Origin: Bugula neritina
Taxonomy: Eukaryota; Animalia; Bryozoa
NCBI GenBank assembly: GCA_964035545.1
Contig: CAXIUT010000118.1
Location: 1-18,528 of the forward strand
Reading direction: 5' to 3'
DNA length: 18,528 bases
The translations under genes and the position numbers were made by a program. Shown piece after piece: positions 76-18,528 of this stretch. Within the stretch, counting starts at the first letter, position 1. The number at the start of each line of letters is the position of its first letter. The notes under the pieces were generated by a model. That model did no database searches. It was not told where the DNA came from and worked only from the letters and a program-made list of their open reading frames with translations.

Positions 76-318
76 GTACCAAAATTATAATTATTAAAAT
101 ATGATAATAATGACATTTGTAAGATAAAAGATATAGTCCATTATGATAGTTCAATAAAATAAACCCAAGTAGATAATGATATTTTGATTTTCAAAAAATT
201 AATATAATTAAGAAAATATCCTCTATGATGAAAATACATCGAAAATATGTCTAAAATTGTTAATACATAGTGAAATAATTTATATTTTTCGATATTTAGA
301 TAAATCATGGGTTCAGGA

Positions 319-3132
319 TCAAACAAGATACTTGTCGTATAATTCTCCAAACTTTTCATTGTTTTATGCATTTTTCTTAACATAGTTAATTCCCTTTTTA
401 GCAACTAAACTGAATTGTTTTTCAGGATGATACTTTTAAATCCACTTAGAAATGAGATAAGTAATTACAGCAATTATGTTGGTTTCCTTTGATATTGATT
501 CTTGGATATTATTACCGAATAGCCGACCAACTAAATTGATGTCTTTCCATGAACCTTCAGCTGTTTGACATGCTACTATTTCTGTAATGTTGATAGTTGA
601 CAAACTTGTTTTAATAGTTTACTCTTTTTTCTTTTATATTTGGACCTAATTTTATCTTTTTTATATTTTTTTCTTTCTTTTTTTTTTATCCTTAACAACT
701 ATTTCTTCTTATAAATCATCATCTTCTTAATCAAGACAATCTATGAAATCGTGTGACTATTTAATAGATTTAGTATTCATATTCAATTTTATATTAGCAT
801 TTACATCTTATCTTTCAAATTTTTAAGTAAAATTTGGTTTTTAACATTCTTATTGGTATTCATCAAAAGTATAATTTTAATTCATATTCTAGCCCTTACT
901 ACCTGTAAAAAATGATGTCACTTTACTAAAGAAACTTTAATCCTCTTTTTCTTTTTTAGCTTTTGCTTTAACAACAGGTTTTGAAGTTATTTTTTTTCTT
1001 GATTTTAATGATTGTTAGGGAATCTCACGTTACATGCATAATTATTGTTTCATTGAAGCCATAGAATACGATTAAGATATTTGAGGCATTGCAAGGTTTT
1101 TGTATAAATTTTGATTAGATAATTTTTAATCAAATTTTCTTGGTTTTTTTAAAAATTGATTTGAGTGATACATTTAATACTCAACTGGTTTAGGATTCTA
1201 TACTTAAACCTTAATTTGTCCTTTATCTTTGATTTCCTCATATTTTCCATCAATTAATTATTTTTAAACACAAATAAAGGCAGTAAATTCTGATAAGATT
1301 TGATGTTTGACGGATTCTTTGATTATTTCTGCTTTTCTATCAACTACTTTTACATAGTACATAGTATCTTCAATACTAGAATTAGTTTTATTGGCATCTT
1401 CAAGTGCTCTTATCTTTTTGAAGTGACCCATTCTGTCAATAAAAGACTAGCTTTCATTCGAAGGATCTATCACTATCTCAGACTGGTAAGGTAGTTTGTT
1501 TATATTGTCTTAGTAAGAAAACGAAAAAACAGCTGGCTTTTCTAGCTGACCTTTGAATGTTATGTAAAAGTTGACTAGTTCATTCTTAAGGATGTAAGGC
1601 ATAGACTATGGGTTAGGAATGATGCTTTCAACTTAATTTTTATCAAAATTAAGTTTTATTTTACTTATTACAGGTGATAGTGAGTCACTTAGTAACTGAA
1701 TAATCTTCTAAGAAGGATCTTAAGCATCATTGATAAAGACATGAATGCCTTTACCTTTCTTAGCACAACCTAAAATCAACTCTTAAGAACAACCATTACC
1801 AATACCAATAGTATGAACTCTAGAGTATTTATTATTAAGACTAACCATCTTGATAACTCCTTCAGTATTAGATACTCCTCCATCTGTGAGCAAAAATATT
1901 TGTTTGGGATATCCTTCAATAGGCTTTTGATCGAGAATATTTTTCAAAGGATCATATATCGAAGTACCTCCCAAGTTAGCTGACATTACTTTGATTTTAT
2001 TGACAGCAGTAGATATATTATTATCACTATATTTGACACTCTTCCCAAACATAGTTTGACTATTTGATCCAAAACTGATTACATTAAAGTAGGTATCTTC
2101 TGGAAGACTTTTAATAAAAAGAATCAAAGCTTCTTTAGCTTTTTATATTCTTTTTCCTCCCATAGATCCACTTCTGTCTAATAAGAAGATATACTCTCCT
2201 TTACCATGTTAGATATCTGTTTCAAAAGCTTTGCCCAATATTGATGCCTTATAAGCATCATCAAGGTTAAGAGTACAAAACTTAGGAATAAAAGATAACA
2301 TGGCTGTTGATCCAGCATCTGTTCTACCGAACACTGAACTTGGTAGTTGGAAATCTTCAGTTGTATAACTAAAGCAGAAGTCTTTATTAGGGACACAAGC
2401 TTCATTCATAGCAAATATGCTTTCAGTTTGACAGTCATTTTGGGAAAGCAAAGTGATATCGTGAGTATTTGAGTCAAAGAAAACAACTTTTCTTGCTGTC
2501 TTTAGACTTATCTTGAAATTCCAGTAAAAATCACCTTTAGCCTTTGCAGCATCGTTTCTGAATCCAGCTTTGATCTTTTCTCCAGGAATGTGATTAAGAT
2601 ATTTTGGTGAAATAGTACCTATCATATGTAGTTGATAAAAAGTATTTAAAGATAAAGTCAACTCTTGAAGATAAACTATCTCTATTTTCACTGACTCTTT
2701 TGGAGGAATATTTCCCACTTTCAAGTTGAGAATATCTTTGCTTTAAGGATTAATCTCTCCATAAGCAGCTTTCTTACCTTGTTAAACTGCTTCTTTGTAT
2801 TCCTTTTTTGCTTCTTCTTTTTCCTTCACAATTCCTTCAATCCTTGTCTTTCCAAACTCAGCAACAAATCTATAAACACAGGCATCAGGATTGATAGGAA
2901 AGCTATATTCTACTTCTAAGAATTTATCAGTCGGATTGAAGTAAGCTTGAGTGAGCGTTACATTTGCAATAGCATTATGGACTTCAATTTAATATTCTGA
3001 TGATTTGAGTGGCACAAGAATATCTTCATTAGGACGGATTTTGATGAGATCAGGGTTTATAGCATAGCACCCACATCTTTGTCTTTTAAGATTCTTCACA
3101 GGTTCATAGACCAAATCGTATTCAGCAATCAT
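319..3132 (-). CDS. VIT + von Willebrand factor A domain protein (VWA5A/inter-alpha-trypsin-inhibitor-like), 937 aa, no introns
   Basis: With TAR=Glu one frame is open from ATG 3132 to TGA 321-319. It has a VIT domain (VPLKS...YFNPTDKFLEVEYSFP...GIVKEKEEAKKEY...VGNIPP), a vWA domain with MIDAS (YIFLLDRSGSMGG, FNVISFGS, ANLGGT, IFLLTDG, VHTIGIG), LSEFTAFICV, a long low-complexity linker and C-terminal IVACQTAEGSW. Confidence 0.92.
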
Positions 3133-3837
3133 TGTTAAAATTATAGCTTATCAATGGATATATCATTTAACAAGAAGTAATTGGTTATATTCTGATAGTT
3201 TAAAAATAATAAAAGAATAATTTTTCTATAATTGAAATATCCTCATAAAACATTTGATATTTTATATTTTGTTTCAATTTAACAAGTGAATAAAAGACTT
3301 CTCTACAATTTCTTTCATTTTAGTTTGAGCGAAAGAAAAAAATATCTTAATTTTAAGTTCCTTTAATAATGTTTTTTATTTGAGCTAAATTCTTCTCAAG
3401 TTATGAGTTTGCTTATAAGATGATCAATAGAATTATTTTTTATCTTTGATTGTATGTTATTTTTTAGAAAAATGGAAAGTATTTTAATTGAAAAAAAGAA
3501 AGATAAATCTTAAATAGCTTCTATAATAGAGAATTGCTGGAATTTATTTATAACAAGTACAACTTTTTGAAAAGATTATTCTTTTAAAAAGTCAATAAAT
3601 TAAAAAAAGTCATTTTAAATAACAATTTAGCTGGCAATATATGATTCCTTTCAACAAAATCATATATTTCGAGATTAATTTGATCTCAAATTATAATTTT
3701 TTTATCTGAAATAAAGCTTTCCCAATATTTATTAATTATTTTATTAATTTACGATTAATCTATTGCATAATAGATCAATTTTAGGAATGATTAATATTTG
3801 ATTTCATGAATTATATGAAATAAGGAAAGTTTCAGTA

Positions 3838-4802
3838 TCATTTTTTAGTTCCCTTCTTATTTTTGAAATCACTTCTTGTTCCTGATGCGCTTGCAAATGG
3901 TCTAGCTGGAACTCCTCTTTTTAAAGTGTGACTAAAATTCTGTGTAGTAGATCCTATACTTTTTCCTTTCCCTACATTCTTTACATTACTAGCTCTTTCC
4001 AAAATATCATCATTTAGTTTGAAATGATCTTATAAAATTTCATTTATCTGGTTGGAGTTCATTTCTTTATCAATTTTTAGAAGCTCTTCTTATGGAGATA
4101 TTAAGTCCATATTCTTTTGGATAGCACCGAAGTGTAAATTAGTTTTAAGTTGATCTGAAAGGTGATGTTGGTGTTGATGAAGGTGATTGATTTCCATTTG
4201 TTATTCTTCTTGAATATTTTATAACTATTCTATTTGTCTTTAAGCTTCAGCGACCTTCAACTCAATAGCACTTAGATACTCCTGTTTCTGTACCTTTTTT
4301 ATTTATCCCATTTATTTGTAATTAAACATTATTTCGTTTTGTTTATACTACCTGGAAGGAGAATTTTTGACTTATTGTGATGGAGATCGAGTGAATTCTT
4401 TAGAAGCATTGAATACAGGACTTGTTTTAAGGAAATTTTATGTTTATTTTTGAATTTGAGGGATGTTAGTTTTTCTAAATTATGGTTTATAACTGCTCTT
4501 GGCAATAGCTTGAGCAAGTTCTCTGAATAAAAATAAATTTACTCACTAATGCCTTCCTAATGAATAACAACATTCTTGGATAGAAGATTAAGATCTTGTT
4601 CATCACAGTCTCTGAGGTAGAGATTGCAGCGATTGTAACGATCAAAAAGAGAAGAAGAAGTAGGAGGTTGCTGATAGTGAGTAGGAACTCTTACAGAAAT
4701 AGCTTGAGATGGGTTGCCATGGACGAATGAATGAATATCTGCTTTGCTAAAGTTTCCAGGTTTGTAGTTCAGAGGTCTGCTCTTTATACTGCTGTTTTGC
4801 AT
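3838..4802 (-). CDS. Hypothetical protein, 314 aa, central Glu/Gln-rich probable coiled coil; one intron (4523-4542)
   Basis: ATG 4802. Removing the 20-nt GT-AG intron gives 945 nt open to TGA 3840-3838. No domain recognised. Confidence 0.7.
4523..4542 (-). other. Spliceosomal intron, 20 nt (GTAAATTTATTTTTATTCAG)
   Basis: GT-AG ends, AT-rich, matches the other introns in length and consensus, and joins two long open frames. Confidence 0.75.
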
Positions 4803-4970
4803 TATTATTTAGAAAAAAATAATCTTCAATAATTATGTATTCACTATTATCGATTTATGAATAAATACTCAAAAAAAATCATTTTAATAACTTTAGAATT
4901 TAATCAATAAAAATCTTTCTGTATCAGGTTTATAGCTTTTTATAACTAGGAGTAACTGCTATAATCTTTC

Positions 4971-5945
4971 ATGAAAAATAGATTTATTGAATCTAAAGAA
5001 TCATCATTTCTTCTTACTAGTGGACCTAATACAGCAAGTCTTCCTCTATCTAACGAACCTTCTCTCATATAGAAGTAACTTGATCAACAAGAAGTTTCCA
5101 ACATATCACAGACAGTGAATAATCAGCCTCTTCTTAATTATCTTTTCTTTAGTCGAGAACAGTCGTAAAATCAATAACTTCATCAACCTATATCTTTTCA
5201 AAATAGATAAATAATCAACTAAAGCTAAAAAGAGATGTCGAATGGAAAAAATCAAACCAAAAATAGGAAAACTTCTGGTCATTTTAGAATGAAAACTAAT
5301 GTCGATTCTTCAAGAATCAAGAATAAATAAGAAGTTTAGTCTTTAAGATAAGAAAATAATTTATTGAAAGAACAATTGCTTAGATATGAAAAGAAGATGA
5401 TAACTATGGAATCAGTTCAATCATAACTCTAGTATCTCAAAAAATTATCACTTCTACAACAGTCATAAATTGATAGACTAAGAGCATATTCTAGACAAAA
5501 TCAATGTCAAAAAGCATAGTTTATCTTTAAAAATAATAAATAAACTTACAATATTGATAAAACTCCTGATAAAAAATAATACAAATTGACAGATTTTTCA
5601 AATAAAAAGGGCAAAAACAGAGAAAGTCAAGAAAAATACCAAAGAGATAATAAAGATGTTTATTCCAAATACAACAAATAAAATTTCGAAAAATTAAGCA
5701 GCAACAAGAAATCACTCTATAAGGGAAGTCAATATGGACAAAAAAAATAATAATTAATTTTTGGAAATGAGTCTAAACTGTTCAATAACAACAAAGAAGA
5801 TTATGTTAGATTGGGAGATCGATGTCCCACATAATATTTGGATCATTCTGAATCAAAAAGCACAAAGTCAAAAAAAAAGAGTATGACCAATGTTGGTTCA
5901 AGAGTGAGAGGATCAAAGTCAACTCATAAACGATCCATTTTTTGA
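4971..5945 (+). CDS. Hypothetical coiled-coil protein, 324 aa
   Basis: ATG 4971 to TGA 5943-5945 is open under TAR=Glu. It includes a heptad-like segment, EVESLREENNLLKEQLLRYEKKM. No family recognised. Confidence 0.7.
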
Positions 5946-6199
5946 TATTGATTGTTTCGATTGTATTTATGAAAAAAAAATGAGAGAGAAAGTCTTACAA
6001 GTAACTTTACAGGTGACTTTACTTGGATAGAATATGTATTAAATAAGAGTATTCAGGATACCTTGGTTTGGTCTAATCATTTCGCGATGATCTTCATCGG
6101 CCTTCTGTATTTCATCATTTTCATAATATCTTTGATAAGGTCAGAATTATTTAGTTAATCGAGAGTTTTTACATCATATATCAGAAAAATTAAAAATTA

Positions 6200-7204
6200 A
6201 TGTCAAGTGGGAATTTCAATCAATAGAAGGTTCTTAAGACTCTAGTCTTCTAGAGACAAGACACACACCAATCGGTCATCATAGAGTAAAAAATAGACCT
6301 CAACTCATAGTTTATCAATCTTTCTGAGCTCCTAGATCTTTATTGCCAAACTATGGAAAACTAGATTTTTATCTATGACCCAGAAACCAACCAATTTATT
6401 TCTTTAGCTTAGATTTGTCCTCAAAGAGGAATGATTCCAAAATCTAAGTTAGATTGTTCCATCATCTTCATCAGATACACTTTATCTTCAAAAAACAAAG
6501 AAGAACATATGATCAAAGAAACTAGTTCAGAGTCAAATTCAAGAGAAGCAGATAGCAATCAAGGTAGGAGTAAAGAAAGGACCATCGGAGAAGTTATCTA
6601 AATTGTCAAAAAGTGGCGTGATCTTCATTTTAACAGATCTATGAAGAAGAAAATTAGTCTTCTTGAAGCTGCTCGTATGATAGGTATTTCTAAAAAAAGT
6701 CTTGACGACTACTATTGTCAGTTGAGGCTGGGATAGGGATTAAAATTTGACTTCAATAACCATCTTTATTAAAAAATGGGTATTCTCAGAAGTTATGTAA
6801 AGGAATATAGACCTGAACAAAATAGATCAAAAAGAAGACAAAACCAACAGCACCCTAAAGAGCTGAAAATAATCAACTATTATGACATTGAAACTCATAG
6901 CCTTAAATTACCTGAACATTTTTTGAATGACTCTGAGCTATTAGATAACTAACATACAAACAAATAAGTTAATACTATGCAGTCTATGCAACCAGATGCT
7001 GAACTGTATATGGAAAGTGAATGTGGTTCTTACTTTGGATTTGGCTAGAAAGAGAACTCAGTAGTTCTTTTCGGGTTATAAGATTAGTTTTTCAAAGGTT
7101 TTGAAATTGGCCTAGGAAATGAGGATCCATATTTCGATGTAAATAAAAACATAAGAGATATTGATTCAGATTTTGACAGCAATAGTTTGCTATTGCTAAA
7201 TTGA
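6200..7204 (+). CDS. Putative helix-turn-helix DNA-binding protein resembling an uncharacterised ciliate family, 334 aa
   Basis: ATG 6200 to TGA 7202-7204. The core RSKERTIGEVIEIVKKWRDLH...ISLLEAARMIGISKKSLDDYYCQLRLG...FDF...KMGILRSYVK contains an HTH-like 'EAA..IGIS..SL' signature. The tail is acidic. Confidence 0.8.
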
Positions 7205-7460
7205 TATTTTATGATATCAAATAGTTATCAATAATCCTCCTACTTATCTTATTTAGTAATAATATTTAAATCTTTTTCTCATTAAATAAAAATAAACTGA
7301 CAAAAATATATCTTGGATATTAGAGAATAATGCACTTAAGATGAAAAATAACAGTCAATGCTCTTTAAGTTAATATTTTACTTCTAGAAAATTTAGTTTT
7401 CAACATTTTAATTACATCAGAAATATTAAAAAATTAAATTTCGTTTGGGTAAACTCAAAG

Positions 7461-8231
7461 ATGGAAGTCTAAATGCAAGATGATACCTTATCCATTGGCT
7501 ATTATCCTTTTAGAGCTAAGGCTCAAGTTCTAAGGCTACTATGTGAATACCTTCACTTAAGTTATTCTGATCGCTTTTTCAGCCCAGATTAATGGAATCG
7601 CTTTAAAGAAACACAGACCAAAAGATGGATGGTTAAGGATCTACCTTTCCTCCAGCAAGGAAATTTCGTGCTGACAGGCAGTCATGCAATGGTCGGTTAC
7701 GTTGTGGAGCTTGCAGGCAGATATGATCTTCTAGGGAAAACTGAAGAAGAAAAAATAAAGATTGATAGTTTTAGGAGCAAATGTGATCTTAAAGATACTA
7801 TAGTTGGATTTTTGTGCAATAATAGGCCAACAACATGTCAAGAAAAACAGGAACAAAAAAGACAGCTTTCTGAGTTATATCAGAAAAAAATATCACTCCA
7901 AATGCAATAATATTAGCAAAATTGTTCTTCTGAAGGTTACTACTATGGCTACCTCACAGTAATTGATTTTGCTCTTTACGAAACAATGAACTATTTCAGA
8001 CGATTGTTTCCCAATAAAGTCAACAATTTTCCAAAGTTAGTCAAGTTGCAGGAGAAAGTAGCCAATATTCCTTAAATTAAAAACTATGAAGAATCAGATA
8101 GAGCAGTTGTCTAGTTTTGTCCTATGAAATACTTTAAGAAATTCAAAGAATAGAAATTAAGAATTTGGGAAAGAAATACTAGTTAGACAACGAATACAAG
8201 TCCTGAAAATAGAATTAATTCATAATTCTGA
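7461..8231 (+). CDS. Glutathione S-transferase (mu-class-like, divergent), 256 aa
   Basis: N-terminal IGYYPFRAKAQVLRLLCEY (compare LGYWxIRGLAQxIRLLLEY), DLPFL cis-Pro motif, GYLTVIDFALYE N-capping box, FPKL, IPEIKNYEES. Stop TGA 8229-8231. Confidence 0.9.
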
Positions 8232-8327
8232 TATTTCACTTGATGTTTATAGTACAAATCGTTATACTCTGTACACTTCTAACTCAAAATCAATCAATAT
8301 TTATTTTCTTATTAATATATTGAATAA

Positions 8328-8851
8328 TCACTATTCTTTTCCAAAAATGAGATCATTTAAAATACAAGTGTCTTGATTTTCATATTTTTTTGTTTGAACT
8401 TTTTGTTTCAAATATTATTATACTTAATTTTATGATTTTTTGAAATCATCTATAGATTTAAATCCTAAAAGATATCCTTCTGAAGCAAGTTTTTCAATAA
8501 GTTATGTTTGGTGGTTTCCAGAAAGAGTATCATTTGCAATAGCTATTATTTTGGTAGGACGAGGTTGATTCAAGCAACAAAGTAAAGTTCCTGCGCCTCC
8601 ATGAGTGATTATAATTGAATGTGCTTTGTAGACTTCTGATATATTATCACTTAATCTAAAATATTCACCTTCTGGAATGATTTTTCCACTGATTACAATA
8701 TTAATTACGTGGCACCAATCTGATAAGTAATAGGAACTGATTCCATTCCACAGCGAGCTATCAAGTTTTTGAACTAAGATGAAGAAGTATATGTTATTAA
8801 CTGATCAAATTCAGTTGTTCCCACGGTGACTAATATTTTCTATTTTATCAT
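8328..8851 (-). CDS. ALG13: UDP-N-acetylglucosamine transferase catalytic subunit ALG13 (GT28 C-terminal type), 167 aa; one intron (8689-8708)
   Basis: Motifs ILVTVGTTEFDQL, YQIG, IITHGGAGT and NDTLSGNHQTELIEKL. The frame is restored by removing the 20-nt intron. Confidence 0.92.
8689..8708 (-). other. Spliceosomal intron, 20 nt (GTAATTAATATTGTAATCAG)
   Basis: Needed to put the N-terminal TVGTT and the downstream HGGAGT motifs of ALG13 in one frame. Confidence 0.9.
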
Positions 8852-8907
8852 ATTATCTTTAACATTCGTGTAATTATTTGATTGAATCAATAGTTATATT
8901 ACTCTTA

Positions 8908-10051
8908 TCAAATCAAAGAAGCATAGTGATTGGAAGTAGATCTGAATCCTTTATAGAGACTAGATCTCATAGGCTCACCACCTAATAACATTTTCTTGGA
9001 ATAATCGGTCATTTTTACTGGATATTTATCTGTTTGATCTTGATAACCCTATCCAAGTTTGGCTTTTTCATAGTATTTTTGCTTTATCTTTTCAATGCGA
9101 TTTTCTAAATCTCTTCCTAAAGTTGAGCTATCTCGGTAAGGAGTGTCGATTTGATTATAAAAAGGTTGGAAAGAATTATTCACTGAACTTCTTTCCTTTT
9201 GATAGCTTTATTTGTTTTCCAAAACTGTTTTGTATTTATTTTCTGACATTCCTTTGTAGTTGTATTGGCTAGGCTGGAAGAAGGCAAGTTTATGTTCTGG
9301 ATTATACCTACTAGCTCTATACAAATCAGATTTTTATAGCGAGGGTTGTTCATACTGTCTTTTAAAATCTGTCATACTGGAGTTAACTTGCTTATGTTTG
9401 AACACATCACTTTCATAAATTTGTTTTGTCCTGTAGTTATTATGATGGACAGGAGTTTTATTTTATCTATCACTTGCAAGTGATTCTCTTCTACCTTTCT
9501 TTTGATTGATTTTTCGTTCAAATTATTGAAGTTGTTTCATAAAGCCTGGGTTGGGATTGACCTAAATCAAAGAATTGATACTCTATTTCTTTTTTTCAAG
9601 ACACTTGAAAAAGCTTATTTCAAAGAGAAATTCATATATTTCATAAGATAAGCCAAAACAAGAGTAGTTGAACGAGAAATACCAGCCATACAATGCACAA
9701 GAATGTTAGTTTATTTTCTGGCTTAGTGAATAAAATCAGTGGCAGTTTCAAAATGGAAACTTAGGTCGTAATCTGGATGATCTTCTCCAGGAATGTAAAG
9801 GGCATATGGTACGCTTTCTTTGGGATGCTTGATATGTATATTTCTGCAAGCAGTAAGTAAAGAACTGATATTGTGCTCTGAATAGAAAGTAAATTACTTT
9901 TGAGAGTTTGTAGATTTTATGCAGCTTCAAGATTACCGATATAGATAGCTCCTTTTCCATTAACAGCTTCCAGTACACAGTCAAGATCTTCAGGGAAGAT
10001 CATATGGGCTGGTCTGTTTCTAAAGTTTGTCTTTGAAGGGGTCGATGGCAT
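8908..10051 (-). CDS. Dual-specificity protein phosphatase with long low-complexity C-terminal tail, 367 aa; introns 9878-9897 and 9562-9581
   Basis: IYIGNLEAAENL, general-acid region GEDHPDYDLSFHF, catalytic ILVHCMAGISRSTTLVLAYLM, and VNPNPGFMKQL. Stop TGA 8910-8908. Confidence 0.93.
9562..9581 (-). other. Spliceosomal intron, 20 nt (GTATCAATTCTTTGATTTAG)
   Basis: Joins KKRNR to VNPNPGF in frame. Confidence 0.9.
9878..9897 (-). other. Spliceosomal intron, 20 nt (GTAATTTACTTTCTATTCAG)
   Basis: Joins LQTLK to KHNISSLLT in frame with the catalytic motif. Confidence 0.9.
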
Positions 10052-10210
10052 TTTCTATACTTCTATAATAAAACCTTATTAATATTAGTTATTTTTATTC
10101 ACAACATATAACCGTATTCTTAATTTTAACAATAATTCTATTTTATCAACTAAGCATGACTTAAATATCATTGATCGAATCAGTAAATTAATACAGGTTA
10201 TGAAAGACAA

Positions 10211-12273
10211 TCATTAATGAGCCAATTTGCTAACTTCATAGTTGCCTCTACCATCAAATTTGATCATGTATTCATGATATTTGAAGAGACTACTTCTATG
10301 AGAGACAGTGAATAAAGTAATTCCTCGTTATTTTGCTTTCATATAAAGCTCAGCTTCAACATCCATACTCATAGTCGAAGTACATTCATCCATTATAGCG
10401 AATAAAGGTTTGTGGTAGAATAATCTAGCCATCGCAATTCGTTGTTTTTCTCCTCCTGAAAGAACATCTTTCCAATCACTCACAACATCAAAACCTTTTT
10501 ATTTGTCTTCTAAATAATCTAATTTGACCTCTCCTAGCAGCTCACGCATGTATTCATCACTACAAAGAGATAAATCTTTAGCATGAGGATAAATAATTTG
10601 GTCACGGAGAGTTCCAGGAGGAAGATATGGTCTTTGAGGAATATAAAAGAGTTTATCCATATGAGGACGTTTAAGAATTCCTCCAGCTAGTGGCCATAAT
10701 CCACTTAAAATTCTGAAAAGAGAACTCTTTCCACAACCATTCGGGCCACTAATAACAGTATTCATACCTCTATAAATCTAAAAAGAAATTTATTTAACTA
10801 AAACATCTCCATTAGGTGATATAATAGGGACTCTGTCAAACACAATATAGTCTTAAGTTTAAATAGTTTATCCCTTTTGAATTTCATTTAGAGAACTAGC
10901 ATGTTGAACTACATGTTAGTCAACAACTTGAGTTCGAACGAAACGACCTGTTTCAAGGTCTTTCAGGACTTCCTTCATTTCATAGATAAGAGTAGTGTAA
11001 CCAGCTAAATTTTGAATTTCTTTGTAAGAAATAAGGAGTTTTCCAATAGCCTTAGCCAAGTTAATCAGAAGAGAAGAGTTCCTTATATAATCTCTAGTAA
11101 GAGCTCCAGCATTATCTCCTACTTCTTTTTGATATTGTTCTGCTCTTTGTCCAAATACTGGTAAACCTAGAACTCCGTAACCTACCATAAAAGCTCCATA
11201 TTTTACAAGCATACTGTCAAAAACTCCCATATATAATTTTTTATTCATAATTCCTTCACTGTGTTTAATAAATTTCTAGATAATTCAATAGTTTACATGG
11301 AAAATATTGTTCATTCTTGTTTTTTCCCATTCATTACCTCTAAAAAAGGCAATTTCTTATGCATGATGAACTAAATCAGTTTGAGTGGCTCTGTACTCAC
11401 CTTCAAGTCTTTGTTAACCTGCTATTAGCTTTCCGAAAGGAGGAGATACTATCTTTAGAACTACTCCTGAAAGCAAATACCAAGAGACCACAACAATAGG
11501 TCCCATCCAACCCATAATCTAAGCAAGTTTCTTAGAAAATAGGATAATATCCAAAGATGGCTTGGTAAAGTTGGCATAGATAGTCGAAAGAGAGTTTGCC
11601 CATTTTTCGATATCTGCAGTTAGACGTTGATCAGGATTACTAATACGACTGTCAAGATTTCCTAACTGGTAAAAGACCATGTCCTTAAGATATGTTGCAT
11701 GGAAGAAGTTAGTGAGTCTACTTCTGAAATTCAATGCAAGTTTTCTATTCTGGAAGTCCAGGAAGGAGTTCACAAAGGAAGCAGGAATGGCAACCATTCC
11801 AAGTCCAATTATCTACTTTAAAATTTAAATTACTCTTTGAATGAAAAGAGAAAGGTTTCTTTCAACGATAGCATTTACTATACCTCCGTTAACTGTAGCC
11901 ATATAGATGCTGAGGAAAGTTCTTATCACTAAAAAGACTGTGAGCAGTAATAGATCTCCCACTTAGGTACACTTCCAGGAAGGAATAACTATGGCCACTA
12001 ATTTTTTAATACGTTTCCAAAAGATCCCATCAACGTTACCTTTTCCTCCCTGTATAAATAGAATGGTACCTTTTATTTCTTTTTATGATCTTTTTCTATT
12101 TTCGATTCTCTGAGAGAATCTACTTCAGGTTTTTTATTTTTGATATGAAGAAGGAAGGCGATGATGAGTAGGATGGTGGCAGAGACGAGTTTTCTTTTAT
12201 TACTACCTACTAGTAGCGTCTGGAGGGTGTTTATGGTTGAGGCTTGTTGAGCTACTTTAGAATGAACGGGCAT
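10211..12273 (-). CDS. Peroxisomal ABC half-transporter, subfamily D (ABCD/PMP70/PXA-like), 666 aa; introns 12050-12069, 11813-11833, 11276-11296
   Basis: [36 protein letters not shown] motif HAEEIAFFRG, Walker [17 protein letters not shown], signature LSGGEKQR, Walker [10 protein letters not shown] and TVSHR. Stop TGA 10213-10211. Confidence 0.95.
11276..11296 (-). other. Spliceosomal intron, 21 nt (GTAAACTATTGAATTATCTAG), contains an in-frame TGA
   Basis: GT-AG ends. Its removal eliminates the only in-frame TGA inside the ABCD gene. Confidence 0.9.
11813..11833 (-). other. Probable spliceosomal intron, 21 nt (GTAATTTAAATTTTAAAGTAG), frame-preserving with no stop
   Basis: Fits the intron consensus. 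Removal gives 22 residues from IV to the AIP proline, the spacing recalled for human ABCD1. Confidence 0.75.
12050..12069 (-). other. Spliceosomal intron, 20 nt (GTACCATTCTATTTATACAG)
   Basis: Joins the N-terminal exon to [23 protein letters not shown] in frame. Confidence 0.85.
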
Positions 12274-12402
12274 CAACAACTCCTTAAAATAAATCTATTG
12301 ATGTCATAGTAGAATGTTGCAAACTAATTGTCTATTCATAATGTTTCATAAGTCCAATATCTATCAAATTCATTTTAAATAGTTAGCATAAATAATAAAG
12401 CA

Positions 12403-15400
12403 TCACTTCAAGAGAGTTAAATTATCCTGAATGAAATGGTGAAGTTCTTTATCTTCATCTGACCAATCTTATTCTTTCTTGGATCTTAATCTTCCAATTA
12501 CTTCTTCCATCTTCTTCACTGCTGCTCGTTTAAATACTGTTGAAGTTTTTCTTAGCTAAAGTAAAGCTCTTAATTCTTAAATATCTGATCTTGGTTTATT
12601 ATTTTTAGCTTTTGGAGTAGGACTTGTTGAAAATTTAAACTTTCGAAGATCGCTTAATTGAAGAGTGTTGTCAGTCCATTAATGATAATCAGGATAAACT
12701 AGATTAAAATTAAAATACTTTTTTGATTTTGCCATTCTTTAGCAATCATTTTAGAATATTTAAGGATACTTTATGGTTTAGTTCCTGTTTTGCATTTATT
12801 CATCTCCATTCCACTCACAAATAATATTGACATTTATCTTATCCATTGAACAGATATTTTCAATTAGATTAAACTCTTATTATTAGTAGTTTGCTAAATT
12901 GATCAATAATTACTCTGACAAGTTAAAGAGGATAGTTAAATACACTTTTTTGAGTTCCAAAACTTCCACTTGTTCCAAAACTAATCACCTTTAGACTATC
13001 ATTCAAAAGATAAAAAGAACGAGCACCTGCCACTGCCTGAATAACTCTTACTTTTCCATCTTCTGTTTCGAGCATTTCAGGTGTATGCACAAAACTAACA
13101 TTTTGGTTAGTTACTTGCTGAAAGCAGTTGTCTCCCCAAGTATATACGTATCCTAATTTTGATTTAGCTACAGTATGACCTAAACCAACAGATACTGTTT
13201 CAATAATCTACTTGGATTGACTCAAAGATGTTATCAATTAGGGTTAGATAATATCTTTTTTAGAAATGGAACCTAGACCTAGTTGTCCTTTACTATTATT
13301 TCCTTTGCCATAAACAAGTCCTTGAGTTGAAAGGAAAAGGATAAAGTTGTAAGAAAGAGCTACACTTTTAATTGAATTTTTAAGACCTAAGTCAACTAAA
13401 GATAATTTCCATTCATTATTAGATTAGTTATATTGATATACTTTTCCTTCAGAATTTGTAAAAACTCTTTGTTTTCCTTTACAATTCATCTAAACTATTC
13501 TATTCTTTGTCAATTTATGTTATTCTCGCATTTAAATAAATTATTCTTCTCCATTTTTGATAAAATTGTCATAATTAAATCCCCAAACATAAAGATGACC
13601 TTCAGATCTGATTGTATAACCTGCTCTATCTCCAACAACAATCGATTGAGAATTGCCTGGCATATCCCATTTTGAAACTCCTTTCTCTTCAGAAGCATAA
13701 AAAGTATACATTTTTTATTTATTCGAAAGAATCGAGGTAAATTCTTATCCTAAACTTACGTGAATAGGATACTACCCTTTCCTTTTGAGATCTTCTTTGA
13801 TATCGGCATATTTAGCCAACCATTTTCCTGAATAGTAATTGGTTCCCATTTGATCGTAGTCTCCAATATATATTTGAATAGAATTTTTATCACCATGATA
13901 GATACATTAATTAATGATCCATTCAGGAAGTGTTTCTATTTTCTTAGCATATCGATTTAGAAGCTATCGAGGATAGTATTGCATTTTACGGGTGACTGTT
14001 TCAGGATAATATTTAACTTTATCGATATTAAAAGATGGTTGACAAAGAAGAGATAATTATTTTGCTTTGTGATATTCATCTGTGTAAATGTGTTTGCGAT
14101 ATTCTCTCCATAATCTGATCAGATAATATTTCTTGCGAAGATGTCTTCTGAATGATTTTTGAATAAAAATGGCTGCTTTCTTTGTTGTTAAATAACTTCT
14201 TCGGACTAACTTTCCTCGTGCTAAGGCTTGTATTTTTATTATTGGATTTTTATAGCAATTGAGAAGTTTTAGATATTTTTGGAATTTATGTTGGAAAATG
14301 GCTTGCATAAAGTGATCTCGATATTTAATTAATTTTAGTTTTTTTCTTATTTATTACATAACTTTTTTGAAAGTTCTACGTACTGAATATCCTTTCCATG
14401 TTTTTTGAATCATAGTAGCTTTTCGATGTTAAACTTATGTCCATCCACATTAAAATATATATTTAGCTATTTCTCTACAATTTCTTTCCTTAACATAACT
14501 GGCCATATTGATAAAAAACCTAACTTTAGATTGTAATTTTATAACTTTATTTCTGGTGGCTAAAAATTTTCTTCTTTCTTTTTTCATTTTAAAGAAAGCA
14601 GCTATTTTAGTAACTGATTTAGTTCCTTGTTCTTTTATTTTTTGAAGTCTTTTTTATAAAATATATTTTTTACATGCTTTTTGAACTTTTGTGCAGTTTC
14701 TATTCATGATCTACATACGAACTTGGGCAACTAATCCACACAGCTATCCCTTGAAAATAGCAATTTGCTTGAAGAAATGATTTACTTTTCCCCGAAAAAC
14801 TGAACATTGATACATTCTTTTGATTTTATTAGCGCATTGAATTCTCATTTTTCTTTTTTATTTTGTCATTGCTTCAAGATGATTAAGAGCAGATTCTTTT
14901 ATGAGAATTTTTTTATGGCCCATAAGAATTTATCTATTTTATAGCATAGATTTTGCATGTTTCATTATAAATTTTCTAGAGAAGTCTTTGAAGTCATCTT
15001 CAGTTTTTCCATCTTCAAAAGTTTTGAAGGCATAGATATATTGTTCAATTTAAAAGAACTTTTTAACAAATTCTTTGAAGGGACGTCTATAAATATATCC
15101 TAATTTTCTAATCAGAATAGAATCTAGTACTCCCAGATATCTTAAACTTTGTAGGACAGCTTAAGAATTAAAATTTTTAGATTATTTTTTACTATTTGGT
15201 TTTATACATCTCACAAAATGGCAATCTGAAGAATAAAGTTATTAGATAAGTTTATTCATGTCATTAAGAAATTTCGATCCTAAAAACTTCTTTGATGCAG
15301 TTCGGTTTTTATTTTCAGTTAATTTAGATTATCCTATTATGATTACTTTCAATATTTCATTTGGACTTTTTAGAATTACTTACAATAATTGTTGAGGAAA

Positions 15401-17318
15401 TTAATCTTTATTGCGGCTTCCGAATCCAGAAGTTTTGTATGTAACTGGAGAACAAGAATGACTGATCAAAAACATTCCTCTTTTAGATTTAGGAATTTAA
15501 ACGAAATTATTTGAAGGGTGATTATTTATAATTGTTTCAGGCAAACGTTCATCAGGAGTATTTAGCTATGAAAACTGATTGATCAAGTGAAAAATTCCAA
15601 GAGGATAGAGTTAAAATAGATCAATAACAGGTTTGTTATCTTGAAAACCAATATCATGTGAAAAATCTTTAAGTCCTTCTCTTAGAAATTAATTTTGCTA
15701 TTCTTTGAAAATATAACTAACATATAACTGTTGTAATTTTTAATTAGCAAAGTTGATAAAAAACTGTTAAAGAGAATTGATTTCCAAAACCTAAAATCCA
15801 AAAATATCCAATAATCCTATACTTCTTCTTGCATTTCTTGCACTTTCTTCTAGGCTGACTTTTTCTATTTATATTTTATCATTGAGTTTACTGACTAAAA
15901 AATGAAAAGTTTTTTCATATATATTTTTAGAAAATGAATTTTGAAGTGCAGTTGCCTACTAATACTTCAAAGGTGAACGAATGACGCTGCCTACTACGTT
16001 ACGAGTTTTATATGCAAAGCATTCCTACAAAAACTAAAGATTCAATTCAAGCAATTTGGCAACATGTATTAGATATTATTTATTTGTGACTACAGCCATT
16101 TACTAGTTATTTTTAGATAGTTCTCTTTTGAAAGTTAGATTGCCGATATTTAGAATAGCAGCTATTATGCTAAAAATGCAATTTGATTATGTCTAGCTGA
16201 AATAGCTTGAAAATTAATTTTGTACTTAGATATATCTCTATTAATCGCTTATTCCCTTTATGTCGAATACTGAAGATTGATTTACATATTTATATTGATG
16301 TATGGGTTTGGTTAGAAGAAAATCTTTCTTTTGTTCGGCTGTTGTTCCCTTTAAGAAGTAATAAAATATGTGGTAATTACGTTCTCCTTAGGCTATTGAT
16401 ACTATTCTACTTTTTTATAATAAGTAACTCACAATAAAAGCACTTTTTATGTCTGTTTGAATCTACCCGTATAGTAATAGTATTAGTTTACCAAAACGAG
16501 AAGAATTATCGTTTCTAATAGTTTTTGCATTTCCAAAAGCTTAAAGAATCTAGTTGCATCCTAGGATTTTATCTTATATTCCATTTAGTTTTGAGACTCT
16601 GTTTATATTTTTTAAAGCTTTACCAGGTAATACTTTTTGAGCTCTTTAAAAAGGCAAAGCTTTCATATTTTTACCTAAAGAGGCTAAAAATTTTAAACAA
16701 AACTTTGTGTTTTATGTTTTTCCTGAACCAGATTATCCACTAATAACAATAGATTGGTTACGATTATTATCAAAGAGTTGCCATAGACAAAAGGCGGCAA
16801 GACTATAGATATGAGGAGGCAAAGTTTTATACTAAAGATTATCTTGAAAGACGTAAGTTTGATAATCTAGTAGCAATTGCTAATTGAATAATTTTTAGAT
16901 AAGGACATAGGGATTGATGATAACCAAAGTGGGTCCTAAATATATCAATATATACCACAGTAAGTGAAGATGGTATCGTCTAGATAGCGTCTTTTGAGGT
17001 TATAGAGTAGTTCTGGTTAATTGAGTTATTCTAGGTCAACCATATCTGAGACATCATGTGTTCCGTATGTAAGTTTTTGGCAATCTTAATAAATGACTCC
17101 ATATTATTTGCTGCTATAAAAATGCATATCTTTTTCATTTTATTTCACTACTATCATTATTTATCTTGGGAGAATATTTGTGACTTTTGCTTAAAGAAAA
17201 GCATCTCCTGAAGGATTGGGTAAATTGTTTTTAGCTATTACCCATACGCTACGATCTATGTTATATCTTTTATACCTTTTTATATCCACTTTTCAGTGGA
17301 ACTCTAGATTTTATTCAT
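12403..17318 (-). CDS. Unconventional myosin heavy chain: SH3-like N-terminus, motor domain, several IQ motifs, RCC1-repeat tail, about 1611 aa; introns 17256-17275, 16936-16955, 12894-12913, 12699-12718
   Basis: Motor: LNEPELLYNLKRRY, INPY, PPHIY, P-loop [103 protein letters not shown]. RCC1-like: GHLYVWGFN, GLVYGKGNNSKGQLGLG, GHTVAKSKLGYVYTWGDN. The last two exons are less certain than the motor. Confidence 0.93.
12699..12718 (-). other. Probable spliceosomal intron, 20 nt (GTATTTTAATTTTAATCTAG)
   Basis: Matches the consensus. The spliced frame runs to TGA 12405-12403; the unspliced frame stops earlier. Confidence 0.7.
12894..12913 (-). other. Probable spliceosomal intron, 20 nt (GTAATTATTGATCAATTTAG)
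   Basis: Matches the consensus. Without splicing, the frame hits a TGA shortly after the intron. Confidence 0.75.
16936..16955 (-). other. Spliceosomal intron, 20 nt (GTATATATTGATATATTTAG)
   Basis: Restores the conserved myosin motif IFTYCGPTLVIINPY. Confidence 0.93.
17256..17275 (-). other. Spliceosomal intron, 20 nt (GTATAAAAGATATAACATAG)
   Basis: Links ATG 17318 to the myosin frame (KWIEKDRSVWV). Confidence 0.8.
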
Positions 17319-17424
17319 TATTTATTAGTCCTAAAACTTATTATTGCAACAAAAACTGATATATATCTTTTATCGTATTTTATATAAAATAAGTATAAAT
17401 TAAACATTAATAAATTAAAGTTAA

Positions 17425-18399
17425 TCACAACTCTTAGTCGGCTACTTCTAGCAATTAACTTGATTCAATTGGATCTTTAGAATCAATTACTTCAGCTATT
17501 TTCTATGATTTATTCGAATTAGATTAATTATTACTCTACTCCTCAACATTCTGAGTATTCGATTCTTTCTTGGAGTGCAAAGAATACATATAAACAGCTG
17601 CTATAACTATACAAACAAAATAAAAAATATATTTTATGATTTTAGACTCATCTTTATTTTATTTTAGCTAATGATGTTGTTCATGATTGGCATTTTTAAC
17701 ATGCATCCTATGAGTCTAGCTCTATTTCGTTTTGTTATTTTTATCATTTTATGTATTTTAATGATCTTTGACTTATGCTGGTATTTCAATTTAAATTGAT
17801 TGTTCAACTTAGTGTATTTATTTTTATTAATTTATCTATTTAGGTTATTATTATTTATGAGGCTATACTGGTTAAACAGGTATTGCAGGAATAGATTATT
17901 TATTGTTAACTTAAACTTCTTGAGAAGACAACGAAACATGATTGATTTACTATTATTTTGGGTTCAAACTTAAACAGGCTTTTTCAATTCTTTAAAATAT
18001 TTGAGAAAGAACAGGAGCAGGATAAAAGCCGTGAATCTATTCATGAAGTTATCCATTTTGATTAAGTATAGCAGTATAAGGAAAAGAACTACTTCTTACA
18101 TGAGTCCTGCAATGCTAGGGATACCATTGACAATTGAAATCATATATTTTGAAGCACCATTCTTTTTGATGTTTTAACTAATCAAAAGCAGCTTTTAAGT
18201 ATCGACAGTAAGGACAGTGAGGAGTGAAATATTTAACAAATTTGAAACAACTTTTATCTTGGACAATATTTTTGTCAAATTATTTATCGCTTATCAGTCG
18301 AGAATCAGGCATGTACCATTCTTAGCAGTGACTCAGTGCCATTAATAGTAGAATAAGGACTATGATTTTGGAAGTAGGATTCGTAGGTTGATGATTCAT
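17425..18399 (-). CDS. Type I membrane thioredoxin-domain protein (TMX/PDI-like) with CPYC active site, 324 aa
   Basis: Signal-peptide-like KIIVLILLLMALSHC, then FVKYFTPHCPYCRYL (compare PDI FVKFYAPWCGHC), second Cys pair FNCQWYPEHC, SFP cis-Pro, Glu-rich stalk, TM helix YIFYFVCIVIAAVYMYSL and an acidic tail. Stop TGA 17427-17425. Confidence 0.85.
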
Positions 18400-18446
18400 A
18401 AAATTATCCTTATTATTAAATTAATATTTCTTATTTATTTCATCTA

Positions 18447-18528
18447 TTGGGGTTGGGGTTGGGGTTGGGGTTGGGGTTGGGGTTGGGGTTGGGGTTGGGG
18501 TTGGGGTTGGGGTTGGGGTTGGGTTGGG
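18447..18528 (+). repeat. Right telomere, (TTGGGG)n
   Basis: TTGGGG tandem array to the last base, in the orientation complementary to the left telomere. Confidence 0.98.

Follow-up and report, generated by a model that had tools for sequence, protein, structure and literature searches.

A strong preference for U directly after the UGA stop codon in a UGA-only ciliate sequenced with Bugula neritina

The 18,528-nucleotide (nt) sequence analysed here, hereafter the window, is one contig of a genome assembly labelled Bugula neritina (GCA_964035545.1, CAXIUT010000118.1; contig C127) and is a complete 18.5-kb macronuclear chromosome of a ciliate living alongside the sequenced host. All ten of its genes end in TGA followed by T, as the initial annotation of this chromosome had noticed. 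We find that these ten ends are a local sample of a genome-wide stop context in which UGA is followed by U in approximately 76 to 86% of genes. The U at the first position after the stop codon (position +4) is a genuine and unusually strong form of the known post-stop base effect; it is preferred without being an obligatory fourth base of the stop, and it does not amount to a new mechanism. TGA is the sole stop codon of this ciliate, although all ten window genes and the 93 confident open reading frames (ORFs) described below end in TGA by construction.

Each of the ten window stops is the first in-frame TGA closing a coding ORF or a terminal exon, so the annotator could not have picked the stops by their +4 base. 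All ten lie where they had been placed, at positions that mark the first plus-strand base of the TGA or, for minus-strand genes, of the TCA, and window genes are backed by Pfam matches to VIT, ABC_membrane_2 and ABC_tran, Glyco_tran_28_C, IQ and RCC1 domains. On both strands of the window, T comes next after 37% of all TGA trinucleotides (306/828), and the corresponding share anywhere in about 200 kb of sister chromosomes is 41%. On this background the chance of ten T in ten stops is about 5e-5 to 1e-4, which agrees with the expectation near 1e-4 that had been given for it. Set against the rate at real stops of this genome (76 to 86%), the same result has a chance of 0.06 to 0.2 and is ordinary.

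To obtain that rate, 20 neighbouring contigs were sampled over their first 10 kb and their stop contexts tabulated; 18 of these contigs are telomere-capped ciliate chromosomes, and the sample amounts to about 200 kb. Gene ends were defined with a codon log-likelihood score trained on long ORFs, using codon-score filters together with an intron test and a downstream-coding test. These filters replaced a plain longest-ORF rule, which was noisy (64% T in this assembly). Contigs C135 (L015; 337 kb, 64% G+C, without telomere), which is probably bacterial, and C131 (L011; 13 kb, 41% G+C, no telomere at its start), which may be organelle, ribosomal DNA or another organism, were left out of the counts.

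At the 93 confident gene ends obtained in this way, window included, the +4 base is T in 78% (73/93), A in 15%, G in 4% and C in 2%. When the window genes are removed, T remains at 63/83 (76%; p = 1.5e-10 against 41%), while a retrained version of the method gave 66/82 (80%) and ORFs of at least 250 codons gave 38/44 (86%), with no C or G among them. The share of T climbs with coding confidence, from 57% to 89%. ORF ends that could be rescued by a 20-nt intron into a further coding frame provided an internal control from the same pipeline, and these stood at background (6/19 T) versus 77/105 for the others. Similarly, ORF ends followed by coding-like sequence carried 38% T, and those followed by non-coding sequence approximately 75%.

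The enrichment is seen at +4 only. From +5 to +45 after the stop, T makes up 34 to 48% of bases, which is the composition of the flank (39% T over the 3' flank as a whole). Later TGAs within the 60 nt after the 93 stops precede a T 20 times out of 49 when in frame and 32 times out of 76 when out of frame, or 41 to 42%, which is again background. TGAT is therefore not a repeated 3'-end motif, and the T is tied to the primary stop alone; the recurrence of TGAT in the short 3' flanks, which the initial annotation had noticed, is at chance level. No motif longer than one base was found at the 93 ends, where there is no enrichment past +4 and no excess of TGAT in the flanks.

Not every gene end carries U at +4. 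T is lacking at 20 of the 93 confident ends, and TGA-A, TGA-G and TGA-C together account for 14 to 22% of confident stops. One of these belongs to a Rab gene on contig C121, in which a prenylation motif (...KKGCC) is directly followed by TGA-A; because this motif must be C-terminal, the TGA-A is a genuine non-T stop. The four-base UGAU signal that had been put forward for the window therefore holds as a genome-wide context that is restricted to +4 and conserved in relatives, but not as an obligate signal. Tandem stops are moderately enriched: 20 of the 93 genes have another TGA in frame no more than six codons past the stop (26 occurrences, compared with 13 to 14 in each other frame). This rate exceeds the 11.5 to 12.3% published for tandem in-frame UGAs in Tetrahymena and Oligohymenophorea sp. 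PL0344 (PMC10553269).

Reading frames of the window run open through many TAA and TAG codons and close at TGA alone, with TAA and TAG making up 4.3% and 1.9% of codons in long ORFs. The myosin P-loop GESGSGKTE has TAA or TAG at both invariant glutamates, and in the ciliate eRF1 gene they occupy Glu55 together with further columns where relatives have E or D. The ABCD transporter, compared with human ABCD3, likewise has them at D/E positions. By these positions, TAA and TAG encode glutamate, which is the peritrich nuclear code (NCBI table 30). The Tetrahymena code (TAA and TAG as glutamine) was our initial assumption and was ruled out by the TAA and TAG codons at the invariant glutamates of myosin and eRF1. 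No suppressor tRNA came up when the window and 19 loci were scanned for tRNA genes; the sole match was a tRNA-Pro beside the eRF1 gene.

The introns have the form GTA...A(-6)...AG, and 26 of 32 are exactly 20 nt long. Peritrich introns are also tightly constrained in length (PMC13685798), such that this ciliate has the code, the TGA-only stop and the tight intron length in common with the peritrich system. The placement among the peritrichs is putative, being based on the code and the introns. TGA occurs inside four window introns (9562-9581, about 12896-12915, about 16958-16977 and 11276-11296), in three of them as TGAT. Across the confident introns, 10 of 32 contain TGA versus about 20% expected, a difference that is not significant, and the base after an intronic TGA is at background. 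The fourth of these window introns is the 21-nt intron GTAAACTATTGAATTATCTAG of the ABCD gene (11276-11296, minus strand), which contains an in-frame TGA-A (11284-11287) and is not a gene end. An intronic TGA followed by A had been reported here initially; the intron and the A are as described, but the TGA lies at 11285-11287 on the minus strand and not at 11286-11288.

Relatives of this ciliate were found with a stop-free C-terminal piece of its eRF1, which led to 20 metagenomic loci. At positions that are glutamate in this ciliate, these loci carry TAA and TAG in frame, consistent with use of the same code. Their eRF1 genes end in ...DDFI-TGA-T at 18 of the 20 loci, or in 15 of 16 distinct lineages, and the sequence from +5 onward differs freely. 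Other genes on the same contigs have T at +4 in 10 of 17 cases versus a background of 32%, and in a relative with 47% G+C the count is 4 of 6 versus 25%. Small as these counts are, they argue against a composition effect. Contigs L053 to L060 were dropped as unrelated eukaryotes; the eRF1 stops read in them (L055, L057 and L060) are TAA.

For comparison with other UGA-only ciliates, annotated Paramecium and Tetrahymena loci were reached through eRF1 homologues, giving samples that are small and partly syntenic. T is found at +4 of 33 out of 61 annotated Paramecium stops (primaurelia 11/25, sonneborni 7/12, tetraurelia 6/13, bursaria 9/11) and of 2 out of 5 in Tetrahymena malaccensis, on TGA backgrounds of 36 to 41%. 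With a single ORF method applied to all, this ciliate has 80% T, whereas the Paramecium aurelia species have 48%, P. bursaria 57% and T. malaccensis 38%. Fisher's test of this ciliate against the aurelia group gives p = 0.001. These comparisons show that the extreme +4 bias is not general to UGA-only ciliates, in which a weak U preference may nevertheless be present. As a separate observation, the eRF1 gene itself ends in TGA-T at all five Paramecium loci, in T. malaccensis and in 15 of 16 peritrich-like lineages, even where the genome bias is weak. High expression, or feedback on the factor's own stop, could account for this.

A bias that is limited to +4, independent of base composition, conserved in relatives and weak in Paramecium and Tetrahymena is probably best explained by selection on termination fidelity, with UGA-U as the UGA tetranucleotide that leaks least. 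Because the bias is confined to +4, keeps to the reading frame and is conserved, it points to translation termination, and we infer that termination efficiency or low readthrough would be the property under selection. UGA is the leakiest of the stop codons. As UAA and UAG encode glutamate here, they cannot serve as backup stops in the 3' untranslated region (UTR), and a ribosome that reads through carries on until it meets another UGA by chance or enters the poly(A) tail. Because such readthrough is costly, selection for the least leaky tetranucleotide is the simplest account. A U at +4 may be the context that near-cognate tRNAs exploit least and in which eRF1 would win the competition most often. 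In yeast, readthrough falls in the order UGA-C > A > G > U, with UGA-A being exploited by Trp-tRNA, UGA-G and UGA-C by Cys-tRNA, and UGA-U being preferred by none of the near-cognate tRNAs (PMC4748822). The base favoured here is thus the one that forms the lowest-readthrough UGA-N signal in yeast (PMC4748822).

Several points weigh against this explanation. In mammalian cells a purine after UGA gives better termination and a U at +4 is rather poor (PMC5829715), which means that the order seen in yeast may not apply to this ciliate, in which the favoured base is a pyrimidine. The initial annotation had stated that a purine at +4 favours termination in both yeast and mammals, which is correct for mammals (PMC5829715) but not for yeast, where UGA-U gives the lowest readthrough (PMC4748822). 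In addition, Paramecium and Tetrahymena share the problem of a single stop codon and have little bias, which means that the extremity of this clade is not explained by it. Gene ends were also taken from ORF and codon-score models, not from annotation. Since the non-T ends lie on shorter ORFs (median 180 versus 300 codons), some of them are probably false and the true share of T, uncertain by about 10 points, is likely nearer 85%; coding scores, for their part, did not differ between T and non-T ends (p = 0.19).

An alternative that overlaps with selection on fidelity is that eRF1 has been altered to read a true four-base UGAU, the U being part of the recognition element. We consider this unlikely, but the factor is unusual. 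The eRF1 gene of this ciliate lies on contig C314 (L021:1003-2340, minus strand). Standard-code eRF1 has NGTSM at the GTS loop, and GTS is kept in Paramecium, Tetrahymena and a standard-code mollusc, whereas the loop is one residue shorter (NG-SVV) in this ciliate and in all of the peritrich-code metagenomic relatives (L026-L040). The clade's eRF1 also has QIKD, SIKD or NIKD instead of NIKS, and YNCDSRF for the YxCxxxF motif. The clade with the shortened loop is also the one with the strong bias, and such an eRF1 might have co-evolved with its mRNAs so that the +4 U contributes directly to stop recognition as a pyrimidine-specific fourth base, a proposal that we regard as doubtful. The 14 to 22% of stops without U, including the secure Rab TGA-A, stand against it, as does the L040/L041 lineage, which has the same loop deletion and ends its own eRF1 gene in TGA-G. 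Moreover, a correlation from one clade amounts to one evolutionary event. In mammalian termination-complex structures, the +4 base stacks on the 18S ribosomal RNA, following a purine-stacking rule, and is not known to contact eRF1. A U-sensing eRF1, if true, would be a eukaryotic release factor opposite to that rule, and if the preference does lie in this unusual eRF1, the protein would be useful for dissecting how the fourth base is sensed.

The T after TGA could also be a signal at the mRNA level, for 3'-end cleavage, polyadenylation or transcription termination, as was implied by the earlier proposal that TGAT doubles as a 3'-end processing element. The 3' UTRs must be very short, as the convergent stops at 8229 and 8328 lie only 96 nt apart, and a stop-proximal signal is therefore conceivable. 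However, a single position is enriched while +5 to +45 are at background, the other copies of TGAT are not enriched in the flanks, and in relatives the T keeps its place next to the stop although the rest of the flank cannot be aligned. We know of no precedent for a processing signal that is tied to the reading frame with single-base precision, which also counts against such a signal. Judged from sequence, the evidence runs counter to a processing element, and we think a signal of this kind quite improbable.

Under a further alternative, UGA would terminate efficiently only before U, with UGA-A, UGA-G and UGA-C being sites of programmed readthrough or recoding that extend proteins. Apart from the bias itself, the tandem in-frame TGAs near the stop in 20 of 93 genes suggest that readthrough matters in this ciliate. 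The non-T stops, however, were selected for having no coding-like sequence downstream, and the Rab protein must end at its GCC-TGA-A for prenylation. Sense TGAs are also hard to find: the approximately 200 kb held four TGAs with coding-like sequence on both sides in the same frame, none of them convincing: the 21-nt intron accounts for one, a second at the 5' end of the ABCD gene is an artefact of the frame, and two are ambiguous. A search of the whole assembly for Ras-family domains returned dozens of ciliate matches with many internal TAA and TAG codons and almost never a TGA, and the one readable TGA falls inside a 20-nt intron. Our analysis thus finds no support for UGA ever being sense or leaky in this ciliate, including the leakiness outside of UGA-U that had been suggested, and this alternative is very improbable.

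A neutral bias arising from base composition, neighbour-dependent mutation or gene-model errors is refuted in practice and we give it next to no credence, for although A+T makes up 70% of the genome, TGA is everywhere followed most often by T (41%) and gene ends are model-based, T follows 78% of stops versus 39 to 42% of the same trinucleotides in the same flanks, the bias persists in the relative with 47% G+C, intron-terminated ORF ends from the same pipeline are at background, Paramecium of similar composition reaches about 50% by the same method, and each stop is fixed by the first in-frame TGA.

The context described here resembles the tetranucleotide stop effect of bacteria, yeast and mammals in that the one base right after the stop is non-random, with C being the rarest here. 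E. coli also favours U at +4 in its highly expressed genes. The effect in this ciliate differs in being very strong, with one base reaching 76 to 86% and G and C together making up at most 6%, and we know of few stop-context biases in eukaryotes as strong as the approximately 80% U seen here at +4. Mammals terminate best at UGA followed by a purine (PMC5829715), and a pyrimidine preference at +4 would not be expected from mammalian termination. In UGA-only ciliates (Tetrahymena, Paramecium and Oligohymenophorea sp. PL0344), C is avoided after UGA and tandem in-frame UGAs are enriched just downstream (PMC10553269, PMC6879139). This ciliate is like them in its sole UGA stop, in its avoidance of C at +4 and in its tandem in-frame TGAs; what has been published for them, however, is avoidance of C, whereas here there is dominance of U (about 80%, versus 48 to 57% in Paramecium and about 40% in Tetrahymena, both from small samples). 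The setting of the stop codon also matters in Condylostoma, Parduczia and karyorelicts, which have no dedicated stop (PMC4967479). There, whether a codon acts as stop or sense depends on its position relative to the 3' end of the mRNA, and the same codon is also translated, whereas no sign of a sense TGA is seen here.

Full-text literature searches returned no report of a +4 U bias in peritrichs, of a U-dominant +4 position in ciliates or of a U preference of this strength in eukaryotes. The +4 base effect, the avoidance of C after UGA in ciliates, the tandem stops and the peritrich code are already published, and the U dominance extends a known phenomenon. Added here are a position profile, a control based on TGAs in the flanks, Paramecium and Tetrahymena scored in the same way as this ciliate, and the deletion in the eRF1 loop. 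UGA-only ciliates are natural experiments in how termination is kept accurate after a change of genetic code. The bias can also aid gene prediction, as true ends carry about 80% T versus background at TGAs in retained 20-nt introns.

The individual stops of the window, given here as the coordinates of the TGA-T, begin on the left with that of a VIT/VWA-like gene at 318-321 (minus strand; ORF 319-3150, 944 codons, with a VIT domain in Pfam). The next gene, gene 2, ends at 3837-3840 (minus; terminal ORF 3838-4542). In other strains, as seen in contigs from sequencing runs covering 3600-9500, the +5 base of this stop (3836) changes and the +4 T is kept, which is an anecdotal observation. These contigs are all of DNA and show neither splice joints nor 3' ends, and a search of sequencing runs for RNA of this ciliate found none. 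Three plus-strand genes follow, which are gene 3 with its stop at 5943-5946 (ORF 4731-5945; a second in-frame TGA lies two codons on, in TGA TAT TGA), gene 4 at 7202-7205 (ORF 6017-7204) and a GST-like gene at 8229-8232 (ORF 7215-8231). Convergent with the latter is an ALG13-like glycosyltransferase gene that ends at 8327-8330 (minus; Glyco_tran_28_C in Pfam).

The remaining genes also lie on the minus strand. A dual-specificity phosphatase gene, with introns at 9878-9897 and 9562-9581, ends at 8907-8910, and the ABCD-type half transporter (ABC_membrane_2 and ABC_tran in Pfam) ends at 10210-10213. In the myosin-IQ-RCC1 gene (IQ and RCC1 in Pfam), the long ORF ends in TGA-A at 12860, but splicing of a 20-nt intron skips this TGA; the true terminal exon, which follows the 20-nt introns at about 12896-12915 and at 12699-12718 and is reached through the latter, ends in TGA-T at 12403 (12402-12405). 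The rightmost stop, at 17424-17427, closes a gene for a thioredoxin-like membrane protein (ORF 17425-18400).

The chromosome begins with a (CCCCAA)n telomere at 1-75 and ends with (GGGGTT)n at 18449-18528, both read directly from the sequence. The repeat unit is C4A2 at both ends, and the presence of telomere repeats at both indicates that the window is a whole macronuclear chromosome. The assembly that contains it comprises 216 Mb in 321 contigs and includes multi-megabase host contigs and at least one bacterial contig. Three small contigs, C10, C11 and C14, have telomere repeats internally as well as at their start, those in C14 lying near 18.5, 20.0 and 25.6 kb. Either alternative fragmentation sites or the joining of separate chromosomes during assembly may account for this.

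Two further observations come from other sequencing runs. At window position 8091, within the GST-like gene, a contig from run X2 joins GGGGTTGGGGTTGG-like sequence, and this junction has the look of a site where telomeres are added alternatively in a different strain or population of cells. Over window positions 3600-9500, runs X3 to X5, which carry a second organism label and come from a different study, contain 22 to 57% of the words of the window and diverge from it by a few per cent. This ciliate, or a sister of it, thus accompanies another host or sample.

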